A DNA stretch of 62,306 nucleotides, the filler included, from Choristocarpus tenellus KU-1152 (lineage: Eukaryota; Protista; Phaeophyceae): assembly GCA_964200185.2 (NCBI GenBank). It is 10 parts of 10 records of this genome, joined end to end, with 100 filler letters (N's around TTAATTAATTAA, not from the genome) between each part and the next. Parts side by side here need not be neighbours in the genome. Positions count along the whole stretch, not along the records: positions 5,087 to 19,601 come from CAXNAD020001170.1; 9 more parts are not named here. The stretch is one strand, 5' to 3'. This document shows, piece by piece, positions 5,087 through 19,701 of the stretch. The position numbers were made by a program, and so were the translations under genes. Below the pieces are notes generated by a model. The model was not told the DNA's origin. It saw only the letters and a list, made by a program, of their open reading frames with translations, and made no database searches. The first letter of the stretch is position 1, and each line of letters begins with the position of its first letter.

Positions 5087-5179
5087 GTGTCAGATTTGAA
5101 ATGTCAGCAAAAAAAAAGTTGTTTAACCGAAACGGACGCCCCTTCACAAACCAACCCCCGTCCCCAGATACTTTGACCC
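5087..5179. mobile_element. MITE right end (related to the outer element at 34884-35102)
   Basis: Ends CCCCAGATACTTTGACCC and shares AAACGGACGC with 35068-35077. Truncated by contig start. Confidence 0.6.
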
Positions 5180-7818
5180 TTCGACATATTGATTATAATT
5201 GACTCTCCAATATGCACCAACCAATGCCACTAACTGCACCATATGCCATGTATACCACATTTTTATGCCGCCTTTCCTTTCTCCGCCATATATATTGTAC
5301 GCACATTACGTGAACAGGGTGGGTGCTCCCCCGACTGGCCCTGCTACTTGATGTTTTAGATATAGTACGGATAGTATCAACCAATAAAAATAATGTTGAC
5401 AATAACAGTCTACTGACACAAACTCGGAGCAAAGTCATTGAGAAGACTATTCCTTATTGTTTAAAAATGTATGAAAAAGGACTTGCTACCTTTTGGTGTG
5501 TGCCAGAAGAGTAACACAAATACCTTCATACTATGCCCTCTAGCAACTCTTACATGTTATTGTTAGGAAGTAATAGTATCTCGTCCCTCCTTTTCCATTC
5601 CTCATAAAAACGTTTATCGCCAGTATTTCACCAGACATACAACAATTATTCTGAAGTAGACATTTCTGTGTGCTTGCAATATTAGAAGATATGATAGATA
5701 CCTCTATATATAATAGTGCATGCAGCGTAAGAGAATGCATTCGTAGTATCATAACTGTGATTGCATGCCACAAGATACCTACTATCTGCAATATAAAATA
5801 ATGAAAAATAAGAATAGGAGTATGTATGAATGTTTTACTACAGAGAATAACATTTGTCTCTACTGACTAAACCATGTGTTCAGCCAAAAAAAAAGGTTTG
5901 CAGGAAGTTTGCAGAGAACAAACCTCTTTCCAAGTAGTTATTGGGTCTCTGTAGTATCATAGCATGACACTGTATCAGCTGTCAAAAGCTTGACATGTCG
6001 AAAGAGATCATCACCTTGATGAAACATGAACAATGCTTCCACAACAAGGCCTTTTCATGATGGTAGTTACCACATAAATAATACTCTGGGGCAGCAACAA
6101 GCTCTGTAAACTCCAAAGACTAGCACATATTCATTTCAGATGGTAAGTAACAATTCACATTTTTGTGGTAGTAGTATACTCTTTTCTGTAAAAAATTAAT
6201 AGGGTGCATTTCATGTCTCTTCTGCTGCTAACACAAGACATACTTTATTGAACCTGCGCCTGATCACAGGAATAAACAGTATCATCAATGGTTTTGTGTG
6301 CATCGATGATTGCTTTTCAAATAATCAAACTGATACATATTAGCGACAATATGTGCTTCTATTTAATCAAACATTTATCTACTGCTTATTTATAACCTCT
6401 ACAATAAATAAGAACGAACCAGATATGCTACCAATCGTATAGATGCAGGCAGCAAAACATGAAAAAAAGTGGGCTAGAAGTCAGCCCACCACAAAATCAC
6501 ATACAAATACAGAGAGTAGCTTTGACAAAAAAATTAAGTTGTCAAGTGTGTTTAATGGTATACTGAAATCACCAACACACACATGCACAGAGAAGAGTCG
6601 ACATGTAAAATTGCATGCCCTAGGAGACTGGAATATGATCACCTCATCTATTGACATCCCTTACACATATCCCTCCTCACCCTGTATTCATTACCCCTTT
6701 CCTCTCCCCAGTTCAAACACTTTCAGTGCAGCAATGACAAAGAACAACTGTCGACCTACCACAAACATGTAATATCATCAAGATTATAGGTAGCTACTCA
6801 GCCAGCCCATTTAACCAAGTCATTCATTACATTTTTTATATGGCAATGATGCAATAAAGCGGTCATAGATCATTTCACAAGTTATCTAGTAGGTAGGCCC
6901 AACTCTCTTACTATGATGACTCACGCAACCTCTCACATACATACTCTTCCCAATCAACCGATTACAGAATATTGTCATTTAATCGTGTACTAAAAAATAA
7001 CTATTAATTACTTCTTCCACTTTTCAAGATGACGTCTGAATGATTTTACACCTGGCTTTGTTATAGAACATTCCTGAACATATCCTTTACACTTGCTCAC
7101 GATTAAATCAATCTGTCCCCTATTTTATCAACCAAAGAAAATAAAACTTGTGATGGACATCTGCTCCCAAGCCTGTGTGATCAAAAGGTTTCGAGCTGTG
7201 GTAACCCCCCCATGCTTCTCCTCAGTCCTGCACTCAACTCTGTATGCTGGCAACATCAAGGTATGCACTTCACCTCTTTAATATATCAGAATCTTTTCCT
7301 CCCCTCTCATCCTGAAAAAAATGAAGCAACACTCTTTCTGGACACCCAAAATTTTTCACCAAAGCTGAACCAAAAATATGGAAGCAACACTCTTTCACAA
7401 GCAAATCCACTCATCTGATTTGCTGTTGATCTGACATCATAGCAGCAACAGCAACAGTACCAGTACTTTCCTGGGCTGCATACAAAAGACTGGTCTAGCC
7501 TTAGGCCAATGCGTCCACCCTTGCAACAAAAACTATGTACCACCTCATATAAAAAAGGAACCAAAACAGGACTGCGGCTTAAATCAAGCAAACACATTTT
7601 GCTTAACCAGTCATTTTTTCTCATTTGCCTTGCTCCTCTCTTTTGCATCAGAGTTGTGTCCACTTCTCAAGGAATGAACAGGCTCTGATAATCAATTTCA
7701 CAATTTGCCTGACTCTGATGTTTCCTTATGCCTCTTGACCCTGTTAATCAAGCAGGACAATCTACCCCCTTTAATTCTCCATCCTTCTACAGGAGGCAGG
7801 CACACTGTCATTCGGTCT

Positions 7819-10800
7819 TCACATGTTTTGGCACTGCACCCTCTGATCCGCTCCACCTGGTCCTTCCCCATCAGAGTTGTAAGCATCTCCCCCAACCTCG
7901 TGACTTTGTGCCTGACCAAACTGACTAAGATCCACACGCTGCATCAAGAAGGAACACATTATCACCGTTTTAAAAATTAAATATTTACATATATTGTCAG
8001 AAAGCAAATAGATGTGGAATTCTTATAAAGTGTTATCACCTCTATCAACACTTTTCTCACAAGAACTGCAAAAAAATCAAATAATTTAATCCAGAGAGCA
8101 ACTTTGACAACTTATAAAAGTACAATAGCTGGCATTACTCTGTTGTTTCTTTGCAATAGCAGGAATTCTTAGACACTATGTACAGTAGAGCTACAAATAT
8201 TCATAGTATCTCTTTCTCACCTCCAGTACTGTTTCCTCCTCTTCCCCGGTGAATTCTGTGAACTCACGTCCAGGCAGAACTCTCTCAAGCTGTGCCACAT
8301 GTTCCGGGGCAAGGCTTGTAGGAAACTGGACCTGTATCATTTTAGTGGGGGTTTTCAAGAAATGTTTATGGAAAAATGCAAAAAAGCATAATTTCCACTC
8401 TTGGTCTTAAACATGGACATCAAAATGGAAAGCTCGCGACCATGTAAATTATAAAACACACAGAAAGACTTCAAGACCACACTGCTTGCTAATACTAGTC
8501 ATATGGGATGCTTCAGTGCAGGGTCTCGAGATGAGCGCAGATTTAGAGGTCTTCAACATACCTTGAAAAGGATGAACAGTCGACCCTTCAGAAAAGGATT
8601 TCCTGCAGTAGGCATACCCTCATGGTCGATCATGAACACATCATCATGCTTTGTCACCTGACATGGACGATCAAATTAAACATGAGACAAGAAAGACAAG
8701 TGATTTGCAGTTAATTGTAGCTGTACAACCATCAGAATTTTTCCACAAAACAAAAATCAGTGGCAAAAGAATCGATAGGTCACCTCCACACATTAGAGCA
8801 AATCATCACCTATCCAATAAAGCAGAAGCTGCAAAAATGTGCTCAAATGGATTGTGAAAAAAGACATGGGTAAAGTGATAAGAAACTCACCAAAATGATT
8901 TATCAAGAGAAAGTGGGTTTCACACTCAAGACAAAAAAACGACATAGTTTCCAAAAAGACAAAATCTCCACATAGATGGCACATTGTTGTAATGACTCTG
9001 TAACAAGAATAGCAAAAACAGGAGGAGTTTGTGAGGGGTGGGGAGGACACGCGAACGCACAACGCCAGGTTGACTCTTGATCCTGAGCACACGCTTGTCC
9101 ATGTGCGTAATGGAAAAGTCAAATCCACACAATGCCTCCACCAATGATAACTTGTGCTCCATCACGAGGTCAGCACCTTTGCGCCGGAAAGTAGCATGTT
9201 CCTATCGTGTTCATATTTTGGTGTAGATTTTTTGAGAGGGTATGGGATAACGGTGGGGTTCATATGTTGTAATGGCAAAGCATTTGGGGTCACGAGGTAT
9301 TATAAAGCGTTGCATCAAATCTGAAAGAAAATCACTACTACACACACCCAGAGATACAGAGGACTGGTTGATGAAAATGATGTCTATACTTGAAACCAAT
9401 CAATGTCAACTTACGTACGATTCATGGCCATCTATTCATCAAGAAAAAAATACCTGTGAACTCATCTTGAGACTAACATTTAATAATGATCAAAACCAAC
9501 ACTGAAGGCATATTTAACAAGAAAGCTACAACATATGCTGAATTACTTACACAGCAACCTTGCTCAACTGAAAACCTTTCTATCCCCTTCAATTCGTTGC
9601 AGGTCTGACAGTCAAACACAGCAGTTAGAGTAGCGGGTGAAGCATTACCTTCTCCTCTACAACGAAGATGATGTCACCAGGGACCATTCCTGGAGCCTCG
9701 TCAGCCTCCCCATGGAAGACAATCTTTTGCCCATTGCGCATGCCCTTTGTGATGTTGACCTCCAGAACCTTGCGTTCTTTGACGGTCTGTGGCATATAAG
9801 TACACATTAAACAAATGCGAATAACACTGAGGCACACTAAAGGAACAATTTAAGAACGAAACAGGAATAAATTAATGGACCTGTCAAAGATAATCAAAAG
9901 GACAACACAAATTCTATGCTTTATCGCATTGCAACACGAGCTTAAGCTTAGCTCTGTGGTTGAAAATAAACTCAAGGTGTATGCTCTGATGATACAAGCA
10001 TTCTTAATGACTATCTAAACTTTTTATACAATACATTGTCACCCGTTTCAGTATTTAATCTGCCGAAACGAAATATTTTAGAAAGAATCTTACAAAGTGA
10101 ATTCTCGGTGACACTAGCGACTAAAGCCAGCGGCTCTTATTGCAGTAACAAACAGACCTAAGATAAGGGTTGCGCTCATACACAGCCAAATGAGAACATT
10201 TAAAAGATGGGTAAAGGCAACCCTGTTAACCATAGATTGAAAGTATCTTAGAGGGTACGAGTTTTGCCCTGTTTGTCCATTTGGGGCTTGACTTCCCATG
10301 AGATTTTTTAATGACATTTTTTGAATCCAAAATGTTTTGGAGTAGGTAAAATGCATACGATATGAAAAGGTGTGTCCAGAATATGAATATTGACACTTCC
10401 TAACAAACATGATGGTCAAAATTACATCAAAATCACAACATTGGTTTTTGACCCTCAAATGGATGCAGCTCTACCCTCTAAAATACTTTGACTCCATACG
10501 CATCCGTCACAACATCCAAGTTTTTTAACCAGAGGAAAATGGGTTCAAAAAAAGAACTTTTCTCAATTCACTGCAGCATAAACCAAACCAGGCTCTATTT
10601 AAATTAACATCAGCGCAAATCATAGATATGCAAATACAGATTAAAATTGAAAAAAAATCCTCCAGAAATATCAAGCTCAATACACGAGAACAGTCATAAA
10701 GCAGAAAATGCTTCAATGGGTACTAAATGGGGTGAGTAAGCAGATACCTTTTTTCCTGCACATCCCTTGCATTTGTCCCTGTCGTTGATGACCTTTCCTT

Positions 10801-13800
10801 CGCCCCGGCATGCACTACAGGTGTTCTGGAGCTGCTGAACCATTCCAGGACCTATCTGACGAAATTGGACCTGTGATTTTAACACACAAAGCCCCCAGTC
10901 CCCAAATTGAGAAAGTAAATTCGACACTTCAAAGTAGCATGGATGGAATAGCTGGTTATCATGTTCAAAGCAAACAATAAAGTGGGAAACACATAATTCT
11001 TTGTGTGCCTGGTTGACAATTAGGACAAAAAGTATACCAGGAGTTCTGTAAATGTTCTTTAAAAAAAACACCAGCATGTAGACAGGAATGATGGTATCAT
11101 ATAAAGATGTTGATCTATTTTACTTGTTTTGTTTGGTGCCTGCAAAATAATATACTGATAAAAACCAAAACAAAAAGACACCAGTAGAAGATACAACCTA
11201 TCCCTAATATTCCTTTGAAGTAGAGTTATTTTCTTTTTCATTTATTATATTCAGATCTCACCTGCACTCCTCGACCATGACAAACCTCACAGGGTTTTTC
11301 TGCGCCAACCTTGCCACCATGACCTTCGCAGGCAATGCAAACCTGAAATCGGCAAGAACATAAAAAAAGGTTAACTTTACCATCATTGCGAGTTTGAAAA
11401 ACATGGGATGCTATGAATTAAGCATCAACTGAAGAGATTACTGGGTGTGAAGAACGGTACATTACAATGCCTTCACACCTTATATGGTTCCTAGAGGAAA
11501 GGTCACAATAAGACCTATGGGAGTAGTAATTGTGTTGAAAAGATTTGGAGATTTAAAAAAGCAGACAAAAATGATAGGAATTGGAAATGACATCAAGAGC
11601 GAGAAACCTGGCCAACTGACTCAGACTAAGACTGGGCTAGTTTGACAAAAACATAATTTTGAGATGAATATGTTTTAAACTTAAGCTACTTTCAGAATGT
11701 CAACAATCCTTTTGTGCATTAAAATTAATGCAGTCAACTTCACAAAATTGGAAACATGCTATATACAGCTAAATGTACCTCAGCATACAAATTAAGTGGA
11801 AATAATTAAATATCTCCATATGCACAACAGCACATGCTAGGCTAAGACTTTATCAACACTTTTAACACAAAGCAAGTGTAGTGAATACTAGCAGATGACA
11901 TCTTCTGGTGCATGTTGTGATTATATCAGATTGAAACCCTCAGAGAAACCTTTGTTTTTAGTGCTTTTGTCATCTTGCTAAAAGCTACGAATTTTTTCTA
12001 TCACACTCTCTTAGTGTCAACTCACCCTATTGCGGCTTACAGCAAGACGGCGGGTCAATCCGTTGTAGAGGTCGTCCAGTCCTACCTTAAGCTTGTGGCG
12101 ATCATCGTCACCCTTACGTGGGCCCTGAAAAAATTATGAATGTGTTATGTGTAGGGGAAACCCTGTGTTTATAAGTTGCTTCTCACACAGAAATGACATA
12201 ATTATATTTCTTTTAGTTTTGTAAGGTAACACCAGGTGAAAAAATTAACTATAATTGGGCATTGTTCTGAGGAGAAATAAAGTTGACTGTAGTCAAAAAT
12301 CTGAACTTTAAATTTAAACTTGGGTGATACAGGCTAGGTGATTTTGTTGCTACACATGCAGGAACGACAATAAAGATTGTTCTCTTCGACTTGAAAAAAA
12401 TAATGGCAGATGTATGCGAGAGGTCGGACAGACATACCATTTTATAGCATGTTTTTGTCACTCAGAGAAATGATTAAGTCGAAACGTCAAGCATCTGTGC
12501 ATAAAATTTTGTGCTCTTTTACCTTGGTGATATACTCACAGAGAAATGATTGAAGTCAAAATATCAAGCATCTGTGCATAGAAACTTAGTGCTCTTTTGC
12601 CTCAGTGATATACTGGCAGTTTCAACCTTTTCTGCTCTTTACCAACTACATGCTTACCCCTTGGCCGCGCCTTCCCCCCCCAAAGAACATGCTGAAGATG
12701 TCCTCAGCACTTTGTCCAGGTCCCCCTTCTTGTTCTACCCCATCCTTTCCATACTGGTCGTATAGTCGTCGCTTTTCAGGGTCTGAGAGGATCTCGTATG
12801 CCATGGTGATCTCCTTAAACTTTTCTGGGTCACCGCCTTTGTCGGGGTGATTCTATCATCCAAAACATAGTACGTTACGGGTTTTGGAAGGGGCAAAGCG
12901 GATTAGCATGGTAGGAGCAAATAAGCAACACGGTAAGGGCAAAACAGGGATGGGATTTACCGCCATTAGAAAAATTGAATCGGCAAGGACGCGGCAGGGA
13001 CAGCGGTGCAGAAGGTTGTCGAGTTTTACCTGGCCCCCGTACAGCAGTCAGGTTCTAGATATTTGTGTTCGATGACAGGATTTGATATTTCTTTTGCTGA
13101 TTCAACATAATGCAGCCTTACAGCTGTGTGTGCTACGACCGATTTTCTTGGGGGTGTTATTTCAGAGATCGAATCATGCAACAAAAATATCTGGATTCTA
13201 GTTTCTCCGTCAGTGCGGTCTTTTAAGTTTGCCCCTAGGTCTAACAAAAAGAAGCTATAGTGATGTACCACAAGTGCAGTGCTTTTCACCTCGAAAACAT
13301 TAGCTATGTGATGGGTGCGGTATCTGGCGAGGTTCTTTGAAATTGCATCTAGTTGGAAGGAGGTATCTCTCCTCCTTCAGTGTCCGAAAATACCAAATGG
13401 TTAAAAGTTTGTATCCTTGTGTATCATTCCCGGAATGTCAACTTATCTAAGTAGTCCCATTTACACTTTGGGTTGAGCAACTGTATTACGGCGTAATAAT
13501 GGCAGTTTGACTGCAAATGTATTGCTAAACATGGTAACTAGGAATTAAAAGATGAGGAATAGGTCGAATCCAACAACTGTGAGCACTGGTCAGTGCAACA
13601 TTGGTCTCAAAACCCCTCACACACTTTACAGAGAAAGGGCTTTCGAATGACTACAAAGATTATTACAAACAAATATCAAAGAACAAGGTAATTTGTTACC
13701 TTCAGCGCCAGCTTTCTGTATGCCTTCTTGATTTCACCCTCTCCTGCATCCTTTTTGAGACCGAGAATAGTATAAAACTCTTCCGTATCTACATCGGGCG

Positions 13801-13885
13801 GCGGACCACGGCGACCCCCACCGCCGCCAGGCATTCCCTCTGCATGAGCGAAGTGCTCAAACGGACTTCCCCCAAAGCCAAACAT
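7819..13885 (-). CDS. DNAJA: Type I Hsp40 co-chaperone (DnaJA/Ydj1-like), complete, 10 exons, 429 aa
   Basis: Exons 13885-13700, 12852-12658, 12124-12026, 11342-11262, 10870-10748, 9786-9649, 9201-9061, 8657-8562, 8331-8221, 7938-7819, all with GT-AG introns. J domain with HPD ([14 protein letters not shown]), G/F region, four CxxCxGxG-type Zn motifs ([32 protein letters not shown]), C-terminal domain ([25 protein letters not shown]), CaaX end VQCQNM. Confidence 0.97.
10235..10494. mobile_element. MITE family A (~260 bp), full copy in DnaJA intron 5, TSD CATA
   Basis: TIR GA(T)TGAAAGTATCTTAGAGGGTA ... TACCCTCTAAAATACTTTGACTC, with CATA on both sides. Homologous copies elsewhere in the window. 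Confidence 0.92.
12464..12614. repeat. ~75-bp diverged tandem duplication in DnaJA intron 2
   Basis: CAGAGAAATGATT..AAGCATCTGTGCATA..GTGCTCTTTT..GTGATATACT starts at 12464 and again at 12539. Confidence 0.85.
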
Positions 13886-14768
13886 CTTTGGCTTTCGAAC
13901 AGGTGAGAAAAATCTCCTACTCCGCCGACTTGTGACCAGGGGATTACAGACCTAGGCCCAGAAGTCTGAAAATATATGATTTCAACGTCCTTCGACTATC
14001 ACAGGACTTCCTGGGGCGTTTGATTCAGTCAGTTCTATGGACGAACAACTGTGGGGTGTAGCGAAAAAATCACGTGGCCACCAGTGTTTTCGAGAAGGGA
14101 GAAAAAACCATTATAGAACGCCACCCTCCGTTTCTCATTTGCCCTAACCTTAAACACGCCTTCTTCAAAACAGTATTCTGTATTTCGTCACATTTATGGT
14201 ATACCCTCCCATGTCTATTTTTGGAGGACCCAAAATCACTTTTTTTTCTCATATCGAGACCTTTTCAAGTGATGGGAATTCAACGTGGTTTGCCCCTTTT
14301 CGTTGTATCCCAAGAAGGTAGTAGGGAATAAAACATCGTCGGGTTCAGGTGAGGCTATGCCTTGGATTCAGTATCTCTGTCCTTTTCCCACTTTTTTATA
14401 GTATGTGATACCGATCGGTACTGCGGTCTTGACTTACCCCTCCACAATTATCTGGGATTTCACGTGGACATGAAGGTCTGATTTTGTGTGGTTGTATAGA
14501 TGGTACTGTTATGCTACGTTTCCCCAACCTTTGAAGCATATTATATGGAATTGGAATAAGTTATGATATACTGTTGTTGCAGGGACTGACATCTGTTTAT
14601 GAATATGGGGAAGTCTTGTGCAATCGATTCGGAGATGTGTAAGTCTATTGGGGTATAGGTGGTAGAGGTAAGGATATTAATGGACAGTCAAGCCTACCAC
14701 CATCACGAACTCTGTAACTTATCTCTTCAGATCTAAAGGAATTTCTTCTCACAAGCCCGTGCACAACA
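13886..14768. promoter_or_regulatory. Candidate bidirectional promoter / 5' UTR region between DnaJA and Argonaute
   Basis: 883 nt between divergent ATGs and CpG-rich relative to the gene bodies. CACGTG at 14071 and 14461; two-unit HSE-like TTCgaGAA at 14089-14096. Possible AGO 5' UTR intron (donor 14349 or 14639, acceptor 14730). Confidence 0.5.
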
Positions 14769-17700
14769 ATGGCTGATCGGGGCCGCGGGAGAGGCCGAGG
14801 CAGAGGCGACTCTCGGGGAGGGGGTAGGGGGGGTCGGAGTGATCGAGGGGGAGGCCGTGGTGGCGGGAGGGGTGGTGACCGTGGCGGGAGGGGTGGGGGA
14901 AGGGGCGGCGGGCGAGGATTCGGTGGTGGTCAGGAAGACGCACGGTTTCGCAATGTGCCTCAAGTTCGGGAGTAAGTTCGGACCCTTAAGATTCCCTCTC
15001 TTTGATTTTTCATCTTTTGTTTCACGGGCTGAATAATGGTTGGTGGAGTGATGTAAAGGGGAGCGGGAGAAGGGCACGTGGGACGGTACGATGGCCTCAA
15101 ATAGGACGGGATGGTCACCTTTCTAAGGTTACCATCGCGTACGTTATACCCAGTTTTTAAACCTTACTTTCTGGATATTCTTTGTTTTCAATTCTACTTG
15201 GCAACTACAAATTATTATCCAAAATGCAAGAACCATTCGCAGTATGCCTTAACACTTTTCGTCGCATTTTCACTGCTTGTACCTGATTAGATATCTACAG
15301 AATTTCCACGGATAAGGGATCCTCTACTCAAACTCATCTCTCCTCTACACACCTCACTTTGCCTTGCCTGTCTTCCTTTTCCCTCACTCATTTACCCTTT
15401 CAGCATTCCGTCAGTGGAAATCCCAGCTGGGAAGCTAGGACCCAACCCACCACCATCCCAGAACTCCCTGACGGAAACTCCGGTGGGTTAAGACACACCT
15501 GTAACAATAGAGAGGTTCTAACCTTATTACTGGGCTGTTGTCCATCTTGGCGCCATAAGATTGGAGCCAAAGACCTATCTTCCCCCCTCCCCATCTTTGT
15601 TGCCACGTTCGCCTCCTTAGTTATTCATATCTTCAAGTTTTGATAAATTCCTGCATATTCACTATGAACAAACAAAAAAATGCGAAGGATATGGTGTCAC
15701 TTCTTCAATATGTGGTGAGGAGCTCTGTTCTGTCTTGTTAATACACAGCTATACACTATGAGCTGATACCCTCATATTGCATAGTTTCTGTACAACGATG
15801 GTCTGCAGAGTTGTACGTCACAGTAGAGTGTGGATGAAAAGATCGTTACTGCCAATGATAGTCTACATACAATAGGTAGGATGAGAAGTGGATAGGTGTT
15901 GCTAGACAAATCATTTGTGCAGAACATAGAATTATCATTGAACTAGACATCTATCTCTCGTGTCAGCTGGAAATATATATTTCCACATTCTTGAAACTTT
16001 TGCCTGAAGTGACTAGTCAATAGTAAGTATGAAAAGGTATCCTCTATTTTCAACTGCAGTAACAGTACTAGTCATGATATTTCTGACTTCTAACTGTGGA
16101 AGGTGATAAAGTCAATCAATACAGAGTTCTTAAAGAAAGGGGTGAGGGGGGTGTATCCATTCACATTTTTACCTTCACGATTCAGGGTATATCCCCCAGA
16201 CAGCTGTTATTTGAACTTTTGATGCCTCTCGGAAAACAAAAGATTCTCGGCTAGAAGGTTTTGGTCCATCAGAGTTCTTTCCCCCAATTGTTGCTTTTTG
16301 TACTTCTATTGTGTCAGATTGCACAGGTGTACTGTAGTATTGTCCAAAAACTTGGAGCAGACACTCTACAAGCGTTGAACATCCTGACAAGAACCATCTT
16401 AACCTTTTTTTTCTATTTTCCAGAATTGACTTGTTTCCCATCCTCTCCCTCCCTGCCCTCTACCTGACAATCTTAATTATATGTTGCTGTGTATGAGAAC
16501 AGCTGGAGCAGATTATTTTGCCCCGCAGGCCAAACTATGGTGCCAGGGGCAAGCAGGTGATGGTAATGACCAATCACTACAAGGCTGAGTTCAATCCTCG
16601 TCAGGTCCTCTACCAGTATGATGTCAGCCTGGAAGGGTTTGAGAAAACTGCTCTGGTGAGGAAATTTAGACTGGCAATGAATTTGTGCACATTTAATGGC
16701 TTTCTTTTGGAAGGACATGTTTTTGCCATCAATCCCTGATTTTTAGATTTGAGACTAGTTGAAGACCCGTTGCTGGAGTCATTTTTTTACGAAGTTTGAA
16801 CTACAATTTAGCCTTTTGTGTTTTTGTTACAACAGGCTCTTATTTTTGGGGGGGGAGGGGAAGAGGTTAACGGATGAATACATTATGACTATTGTTGTGT
16901 ATCCTCTGGTAGGCCTAGGAAATTTAACTTTAAGTAGCATCACAATATCTTTGTTCAGTGTGCCATTGTTCCTCCTTGCTGTGTTTATTCATTTCACAAG
17001 CAGTGCTCTTTGTCATCCTGCCCTGCCCCTTTATGTTGTGTATTGTCATGTTTTTTGTTGCTGTAGTGTGTAATTATTTATGTCTTAACTCGCAACCCTA
17101 ACCCTAGCCCTACATACCAAGGAAAATTGATCCACAGGATTTTCCCTTTTGAGAGTCCAATTTGAGGAAGAAAAAATTGCACTTGCTGTGAGTGACAATG
17201 GTCCAGCCCTAACCCGTGGTCATGGGCCTGTATTTCATTATCAAGAGATATTTGTGTTTTTGATGTGTCTACTCTACCCAATGTAATGTTTGCTCTGGTA
17301 TTGTGTTTTTAAATTGTTCTGCAAAGATTTTGCACATTTTTTAACTTCTATCATACCATGTTGTAGGTATAGAATGAAACTTTCCACTAATCCTGTTAAG
17401 ATGACATCGTACATGAAAGATGAGTATGCACTTGATTAAAAAAGGATTTTGTTGTGGAAATGTTTTCCAATTCATCACCAACTCACCTCCCCCCCCCTTC
17501 CCTGCTCCAATTCACTGTTGCCCCTGTTGCCATTTAAATGCTGTAGCCTTCGTCCAAGCTCCGCGCCATCTTTAAGAAGTTCAAGGAGCAGCACAGCACA
17601 ACGTCACTGAACAACATTGCCTTCACCTATGACGGCAGGTATGTTTCCATGCTTTGTAACATTACTTTTGGTGCAAATTGTGATGAGCACTAATGCACCT

Positions 17701-19269
17701 TGTTTCTGGTTAGTGTGATGATGGCAAGATGGAGATGTTGAGTGTGCTAGAGTTATGAGGAGGATGTATTTTTCTTTTGTTCCTGATTTTGTTTGTGTGA
17801 TGATGGGATTGTGAAGGGTGACTTGGTTTTTAATCGCTGTGTATGATTTTTTACCTTCAGAAAATCAACTCCATTGTTGGAAATGTTTTAATATCATGGT
17901 CCCTCTCTTCACTGTTCTTGAATCCTTTTTTAGTGTCTGTGTCTCCTGTTGAGGATTCGATTTTCCATCTGCACTGGTTCTCCCTTTCCTGAACTATTGT
18001 AATACTTCCATGTTGTCAACAGGTCAGTTATGATCACAGCTTCTGTTCTTCCATTCCCTCCTGAGGGTCAGTCCTTTGAGGTGGAGTTTGAGCCAGCTAC
18101 AGAGAAGAGAGAGGCAACTGTGTTCACAGTTGTTCTCAAGCAGGTGGCGACTCGGTCACTGTCAGACCTGCAAGACTTCTTTGTGGGGGTGAGTACTGTT
18201 CTAATAAGAGAAGTAAATTATTTTATGTTGAGTAAGGGGAAAATCATGTTTTTTTTTGTTGAAGATTTTTTAACTTTTGTTTTATCGTCTTAACACCTTA
18301 CCTGTGAACCTTACGGTACAGACTGCGTTTGAGACTGCTTGAAGCGTTGAACAATGTCTTAAGATAAATTGAACCTGCATTGAAGTTTAGTCTACTTATT
18401 TCTTCATTGCTGTTGATATGCCTAATTTGAAGAGGCTGTGAGGTTGGTAATGAGGAGTCACTGGTATGCTTAGAGTTGATTCCTGACCCTATTAGCACAA
18501 CGCTCGATTGAAGAATATGGGAAAACACACTCTAAATATCAGGTCATCTCTCTCTCCCCTTTGACATTCTTGACAATTTTCCTCGATAAATGTCAATGAA
18601 CAAAGGAGAATAAACTTTAGATTTGGTGCATGGTGGTGGGGGACAGAAGGTTATGTTTCTCCTGCCGCTTAGAATTATTTTCTTTGTACTTGTACAGGCA
18701 CCACTCTTCCTACCCCCACCTGCCCCATCCACATGGATGTAGAAGTGGCCGTAGCACCTTATTTCATGGCCCATCACCACCTAGCCAAACCCTAGCATTT
18801 TGGTTCTCTTCAGTTTGCCAAAGAAGCAATTCTCCTTAGTTTCATAGTTGACCCTTGCAACATGCTGTATTTGGGGATTAACCTTGGCACCATCTCTGAC
18901 AAATGATTCTTACGCCATCTAACCTTGGTCTTTGCTCTGTTACTGTATGGGGTGAAACCTTGATGTTCCTTAACTTTACCTTGAGGTGTATTTTTCATGT
19001 TGTCTCCATGTAACAGCAATCATTTGGTTCCTTCCAACCCATGAACCTTTTTTCTTTTCCGCTCCTTCCTGCCCCCCCCCCCTTGCCTCCAGAAATCTAG
19101 TCAAAATGCTTATGACTGTATCACGGCCTTAGATATCTCTCTCCGGCATGCGCCTTCCATGACCCACACATGTGTTGGGCGCAGTTTTTTTACACCAGAG
19201 GATCCACAGAGGATTTCTGGTGGTGCTGAGGTTTGGTTGGGTTACTACCAGTCTCTACGAGCCACACAG
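14769..19269 (+). CDS. AGO: Argonaute protein, 5' part (RGG tail, N domain, linker 1); 3' part lost at contig end
   Basis: Exons 14769-14971, 15404-15482, 16503-16655, 17547-17638, 18023-18188, 19093-19269 splice in frame. Motifs LPRRPNYGARGKQVMVMTNHY, LYQYDV, FTYDGR, ALDISLRH, VGRSFF, GGAEVWLGYYQSLRATQ are characteristic of eukaryotic AGO N/L1 regions. Confidence 0.95.
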
Positions 19270-19701
19270 GTATGGATTTGTACACCGTAGACTCCCTTAA
19301 GGTTAACTTAGGGTTTGTACAAGAGTTGAGGCAGTCTTGTGTGCCGTCACCGACGGTTTGGTTCAGTGGTCTAGATCGGAGCTTGTGTTGCGCAGTGAGG
19401 AGAGATGAAGCCTCTGTGCATCCTTAATAATGTTTTCTTGTTTGTGTATACTGTGCAAACAGGTTGGGGGCGTTTTTCTGTCTGTGGAGGGTTAGACTTG
19501 ATGTTTTTTCTTGGTTTACCCCTACCTTTCACCCACCCCCACCCCCACCCCCTTCCGCTTCAACACAGTTTTTGCACATCTGCTGCTGGTTTTCTCAACC
19601 CNNNNNNNNNNNNNNNNNNNNNNNNNNNNNNNNNNNNNNNNNNNNTTAATTAATTAANNNNNNNNNNNNNNNNNNNNNNNNNNNNNNNNNNNNNNNNNNN
19701 N

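Follow-up and report, generated by a model that had tools for sequence, protein, structure and literature searches.

An Argonaute gene and a class A Hsp40 gene arranged head to head in Choristocarpus tenellus and related taxa

The window analyzed here is a stretch of 62,306 nucleotides from the genome of Choristocarpus tenellus KU-1152. Positions 5087-19601 of the window correspond to one whole contig (C1170; 14,515 bp), on which an Argonaute (AGO) gene and a gene for a class A (type I) Hsp40 of the DNAJA family, hereafter DnaJ, are arranged head to head. The DnaJ start codon at 13885 on the minus strand and the AGO start codon at 14769 on the plus strand diverge with 883 nt between them; the original prediction had the gene identities, strands, and spacing right. 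The same arrangement is found in related taxa and, judging from their sequences, is ancestral to the sampled group. We favor, with moderate confidence, the explanation that this is an ancestral bidirectional AGO-DNAJA pair that has been passively retained and is generically co-expressed. The assembly is eukaryotic and comprises 164 Mb in 27,310 contigs with 41% GC.

Transcript evidence comes from contigs of run X3, which is the only RNA-like run among four public runs containing DNA of the locus. It is classed as RNA because deeply covered contigs of both genes jump GT..AG introns, and these spliced contigs indicate that AGO and DnaJ are both expressed. The contigs end at 14053 for DnaJ and at 14728 for AGO; such ends give the minimum extent of a transcript and cannot define true start sites. 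By these ends, the start sites are less than 1 kb apart, as in a bidirectional pair. The putative shared bidirectional promoter occupies the 674 nt between them (14054-14727, without strand), as delimited by contig pieces, depth, and composition. Its GC content is 41.7%, and its ratio of observed to expected CpG is 0.68, versus 0.46 for the contig as a whole. Neither 5' untranslated region (UTR) contains an upstream ATG, and the DnaJ 5' UTR is 168 nt long.

The original prediction also included an intron in the AGO 5' UTR (14349-14730) that would have shrunk the promoter to 0.4 kb. This intron is unsupported by the RNA run and is rejected: the contigs contain no corresponding joint and no loose end upstream, depth is zero across 14155-14548, and 14728 is the first base of the AGO contig. 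This contig opens with CAG, and both the genome before 14731 and the proposed donor exon end in CAG, so the start is ambiguous by 3 nt. On the DnaJ side, a contig runs past 14053 by 29 nt, and an acceptor-like sequence, ccccacag, is located on the minus strand at 14049-14056. The 29-nt end has no match in the assembly as a whole; one half of it has a single match at chance level, and the other half has none. It may stem from an exon of the 5' UTR, from chimeric joining at the end of the contig, or from a gap in the assembly.

The 5' part of the AGO gene (14728-19601, plus strand) is defined by GT..AG joints in the RNA contigs and by Pfam matches to ArgoN and ArgoL1. Exon 1 (14728-14971) contains the ATG and is RGG-rich. 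Exons 2 to 6 (15404-15481, 16502-16655, 17547-17638, 18023-18188, and 19093-19269) are recognized by joints, a loose end, and Pfam. The contigs remove introns at 14972-15403 and 15482-16501 (joints 14971/15404 and 15481/16502), and a contig whose loose end matches 17547 onward links exon 3 to the exon that begins there. The last 86 bases of C1170 (window 19516-19601) are identical to C1239:1-86, and the gene continues on that contig. It spans both contigs, roughly at least 17 kb, and has many small exons. Because every Piwi exon found in the genome is on the overlapping C1239, which also holds the PAZ-region exons, and because ArgoL1 is matched on C1170 only, the genome appears to have a single AGO gene.

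The domain order, as covered by ArgoN and ArgoL1 in the window and by the PAZ region and Piwi on C1239, is that of the AGO clade. The DEDH positions read as intact in the PIWI exons (GADVNHP, HRKEVIQ, FRDGVSEGQF, and YYAHLVAF), the first of which aligns to residues 588-640 of human AGO2. Human AGO2 and Arabidopsis AGO10 are the closest solved relatives. The AGO of Ectocarpus, Ec-01_009010, is likewise present once per genome, has the order ArgoN-L1-PAZ-MID-PIWI, and carries a disordered N-terminal region (PMC5381526, PMC12867755). Its presumed orthology to the gene described here follows from lineage placement only. The single AGO of brown algae has a key developmental role, and these algae depend on it for development and germline fate (PMC12867755). 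Within the RGG repeats of exon 1, one RNA contig omits 111 nt (37 codons) at 14803-14913. The omitted segment has the ends GA..GC, which is not a splice signal; the skip reflects either allelic variation in repeat length or a collapsed assembly and not an intron.

The DnaJ gene (7822-14053, minus strand) comprises about 10 exons, which were identified by Pfam matches to single exons, spliced RNA contigs, and direct reading. Its 5' limit is the final base of the transcript contig, and the coding sequence extends from the ATG at 13885 to CQNM and a stop near 7822. The coding part of exon 1 (13700-13885) specifies a Gly-rich N-terminal extension and then the first half of the J domain (Pfam DnaJ, E 9e-8). 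Exon 2 (12657-12852, with limits from joints) contains the second half with its HPD motif, read as NHPDKGG (Pfam DnaJ, E 2e-10), and ends with a stretch that by direct reading is Gly/Phe-rich (G/F). All four CxxCxGxG repeats, one of which is CKGCAGKK, are found in exons 4 and 5 (10748-11342; exon 4 at about 11262-11342 and exon 5 at 10748-10870), by three-frame reading and Pfam DnaJ_CXXCXGXG. The zinc-finger exon also was matched in a search of the genome, at C1170:5662-5784. Pfam DnaJ_C matches three exons, and translation of the last exon (7822-7940) ends in the CaaX-type sequence CQNM and a stop. Introns at 12853-13699, 12124-12656, and 11341-12023 are defined by RNA contigs. The closest solved structures to one of the exons are yeast Ydj1 (1NLT) and human DNAJA2 (7ZHS). 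As read from these exons, the gene is a complete class A Hsp40 of the Ydj1/DNAJA type with a CaaX-type end, and the original description of a type I DnaJ ending in CQNM holds.

The terminal CQNM is a putative farnesylation site and resembles the CQTS, CQQS, or CTSS with which relatives end. The protein shares an HPD-containing J domain, a G/F region, four CxxCxGxG repeats, DnaJ_C, and a CaaX-type box with Ydj1 (MAS5), DNAJA1/DNAJA2, Arabidopsis J2/J3, Droj2, and DNJ-12. Unlike these proteins, it has a Gly-rich N-terminal extension of about 35 residues, and its CaaX box is CQNM rather than CASQ, CQTS, or CAQQ. The extension (13780-13885, minus strand) conforms to MF(G)FGG-[SD]PFE-x-F…Gly run…RRG…VDT. 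It is kept in orthologues from clearly more distant lineages (P0151-P0176), some of which have other intron positions. Only two other zinc-finger DnaJ loci were found in the genome, at C3191:6429-6590 and C815:1889-2062. The match on C3191 contains a TGA, which may reflect an intron, a frameshift, or a pseudogene. The protein encoded next to AGO looks like a general cytosolic Ydj1 orthologue with many clients.

All protein searches were run exon by exon rather than with a joined, spliced model. The AGO exon encoding L1 was searched against 1.8 billion representatives and recovered only short fragments at 83-89% identity, and full-length AGOs were only about 50% identical over the matched exons. 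Those fragments (P0001, P0004, P0005, and P0011) are on contigs of 0.9-3 kb, which are too short for synteny. Relatives were instead chosen by using the open reading frame (ORF) of DnaJ exon 1. Orthologous exon-1 ORFs are found in many relatives, and four distinct taxa have 2-4 kb of upstream sequence (L014, L015, L016, and L018-L020); the P0166 locus was excluded because just 19 nt are available upstream. In all four taxa, AGO exon 1 is located upstream of DnaJ exon 1 on the opposite strand, and its non-repetitive end, GGQE[DE]ARFRNVPRV, is present. AGO exons 3-5 also occur in L016 and L018-L020, with 69-80% identity. The distances between start codons are 897 nt (L014), 798 nt (L015), 445 nt (L016), and 890 nt (L018-L020). 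Thus, the arrangement is not missing in related genomes, which had been proposed as a way to refute the prediction.

The relatives represent three divergence depths, with amino-acid identities of 75-91% and GC contents of 41-55%. L014, L015, and L016 are 87-91% identical to each other, L018 shares about 81% identity with these three, and the genome described here is 75-86% identical to all four. Two AGO introns, at 17639-18022 (exons 4/5) and from 19270 onward (exons 6/7), are missing in the relatives compared (L012, L016, and L018), in which nothing separates these exons. Between exons 3 and 4, the intron measures 891 nt here but only about 125 nt in the relative L012. No usable alignment of the five intergenic regions could be made: column identity is 42%, and shared 7-10-mers are not above those in shuffled controls. 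No conserved cis-element was found among the five.

The plastid rbcL gene (C1:102355-103821; L022:1024-2490) shares 90-91% identity with brown-algal sequences, compared with about 95% among those sequences. A maximum-likelihood tree places it as the sister of the sampled crown brown algae (support 86/84), within a group that includes Chrysoparadoxa and Vaucheria. By its rbcL sequence, then, the organism either branched off early among the brown algae or belongs to a close sister lineage. DNMT1-RFD, used as a marker of deep placement, has no match in this genome, and the control genomes are silent too.

Outside this group, the pair was not encountered. A profile search for full-length AGOs of the clade (alignment A4) returned only Heterosigma and transcript-like proteins, with no brown-algal entries. 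The AGO of the raphidophyte Heterosigma akashiwo (P0019/P0197) is the nearest full-length AGO found; it is about 50% identical over the matched exons and has an equal domain order, but its gene is 41 kb long and far more expanded. In the segment that contains this gene (CAXMZW020000518.1:543598-605019), no DnaJ exon lies within 10 kb upstream of it, and no other gene was called within 10 kb on either side. Two more distant lineages have the same DNAJA subfamily, as recognized by its N-terminal extension, with no AGO upstream. At one distant DNAJA locus, the divergent neighbor is an unrelated protein of 555 residues. A scan of metagenomes with the DnaJ exon-1 profile was dominated by generic J domains and revealed no orthologue, and no AGO, among 80 loci.

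According to previous work, brown-algal genomes in general have divergent genes separated by short intergenic regions and served by common nucleosome-depleted regions, and divergent pairs in Ectocarpus are reported to share such regions together with histone-mark peaks (10.1101/2024.02.19.579948). Collinearity of genes is reported to have been largely maintained for about 240 million years (bioRxiv 10.64898/2025.12.07.692804). In our favored explanation, what appears to be the sole AGO-clade Argonaute gene and the gene for a cytosolic, CaaX-bearing class A Hsp40 would diverge from one short intergenic region, no longer than 674 nt between transcript ends. Both genes would be transcribed from the same nucleosome-depleted promoter region, the usual situation for brown-algal divergent pairs, and this would lead to broad, housekeeping-type co-expression. 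The linkage may owe its persistence chiefly to the general stability of gene order in the lineage, rather than to AGO-specific selection. Given collinearity over this time span, retention in four of four relatives is what background inheritance predicts. Together with short divergent regions, such extensive collinearity means that conservation alone is not proof of selection. Several points weigh against passive retention. The partner belongs to the very Hsp40 class that binds AGO and helps to load it in plants, flies, and worms, which would be rare for a random neighbor. All four relatives retain the pair despite turnover of intron positions and of intergenic sequence. The case for passive retention also is an argument from the literature, and the transcript ends are those of assembled contigs, which do not map true start sites.

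The two genes might instead be plain neighbors, with two independent core promoters at the ends of the gap of about 0.67 kb, independent regulation, and an orientation that simply follows the alternating-strand pattern of the lineage. In some brown algae, the strand changes between neighbors for over 60% of adjacent genes (10.1101/2024.02.19.579948), and two core promoters would fit into the gap. The unequal RNA depths of AGO and DnaJ and the failure to find a shared conserved motif are likewise as expected of independent regulation. However, the nucleosome-depleted regions and histone-mark peaks that Ectocarpus divergent pairs are reported to share argue for common use of such a region, and the gap of just 445 nt between start codons in L016 leaves little room for two insulated promoters. 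We regard independent promoters as possible but doubtful.

A more specific proposal is that the genes form a selected client-chaperone module, in which a shared promoter couples the supply of a farnesylatable DNAJA to that of the single AGO and selection keeps the genes together. AGO folding, small-RNA loading, or membrane association would then keep pace. The functional link between DNAJA proteins and AGO that the original prediction took as established is indeed documented. The DNAJA Hsp40s J2/J3 associate with Arabidopsis AGO1 in a farnesylation-dependent manner, and Droj2 interacts with Drosophila Ago1 and Ago2 (PMC6204899). In C. elegans, the DNAJA-class protein DNJ-12 associates with ALG-1 and is needed for ALG-1 loading (PMC11194074). 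DNAJA Hsp40s affect AGO loading or membrane association (PMC6204899, PMC11194074). Retention of the pair while the surrounding noncoding DNA has become saturated is also consistent with selection, as is the presence of only one AGO in the lineage (PMC12867755). Moreover, brown algae provide a precedent in the M1PDH3/M1Pase1 genes of the mannitol cycle, a conserved head-to-head pair with a bidirectional promoter whose members are functionally linked (10.1101/2024.02.19.579948). Like that pair, the AGO and DnaJ genes are divergent, are separated by a sub-kilobase intergenic region, are conserved in the lineage, and have another layout in Heterosigma. In contrast, M1PDH3 and M1Pase1 act in one pathway, whereas DnaJ is a general chaperone for which AGO would be just one client among many.

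Other observations make a selected module unlikely. The DNAJA protein resembles the general Ydj1 orthologue, which has many clients, and the genome has just two other zinc-finger DnaJ loci. A conserved cis-element was not found in the five intergenic regions, and RNA contig depths, a weak measure, differ several-fold between the two genes. Pairing is absent from Heterosigma and from the two other lineages, which have both gene types or the same DNAJA. The finding also is post hoc, as it emerged from a scan of very many windows. The full statement that the brown-algal AGO and a farnesylatable DNAJA are kept by selection as one bidirectional unit, with chaperone supply matched to AGO, is slightly more improbable still.

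Hsp40 genes are heat-inducible in many cases, and a heat-shock element (HSE) together with a CACGTG box might make both genes heat-inducible and so tie RNA silencing to heat stress, as suggested in the original prediction. Both motifs are present. The CACGTG box (14071-14076, without strand) begins 18 nt past the end of the DnaJ transcript contig and the two-unit HSE-like sequence TTCGAGAA (14089-14096, without strand) follows it, so that the two are 18-43 nt past this end. However, their frequencies are those expected by chance: CACGTG occurs three times in the contig versus 1.5 expected, and 39 of 200 shuffled sequences reach three, whereas TTCNNGAA occurs seven times versus 5.5 expected. 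The HSE-like sequence has only two units, with no third. Neither it nor CACGTG is found in the equivalent region of the four relatives, and an HSE of at least three contiguous inverted nGAAn units, which defines an HSE promoter, is in none of the five intergenic regions. The two motifs are therefore rejected as shared regulatory elements, nothing points to heat-shock control through the intergenic region, and heat-stress coupling is very improbable. All three CACGTG sites of the 14.5-kb contig (14071, 14461, and 15075) cluster within 1 kb, in the neighborhood of the shared region and of AGO intron 1.

If pairing at a shared promoter is correct, the locus would provide a simple, testable handle on the control of AGO supply and loading in an independent multicellular lineage. 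If the pair is a selected unit, it would amount to an RNA-silencing client and its chaperone hard-wired as neighboring genes, an arrangement undescribed in the searchable literature, in which we found no mention of AGO-DnaJ linkage. The Ectocarpus AGO papers (PMC5381526 and PMC12867755) do not mention a DnaJ neighbor or chaperones, and the Phaeoexplorer preprint does not mention DnaJ together with AGO. If the pair is only an inherited neighborhood, it would be another case of stable, alternating-strand gene order in these genomes and a caution against inferring function from adjacency.

Downstream of the DnaJ stop, the remainder of the contig (window 5087-7700) contains ORFs without any Pfam match. 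This segment may correspond to the DnaJ 3' UTR and intergenic DNA, or perhaps to an unrecognized gene.

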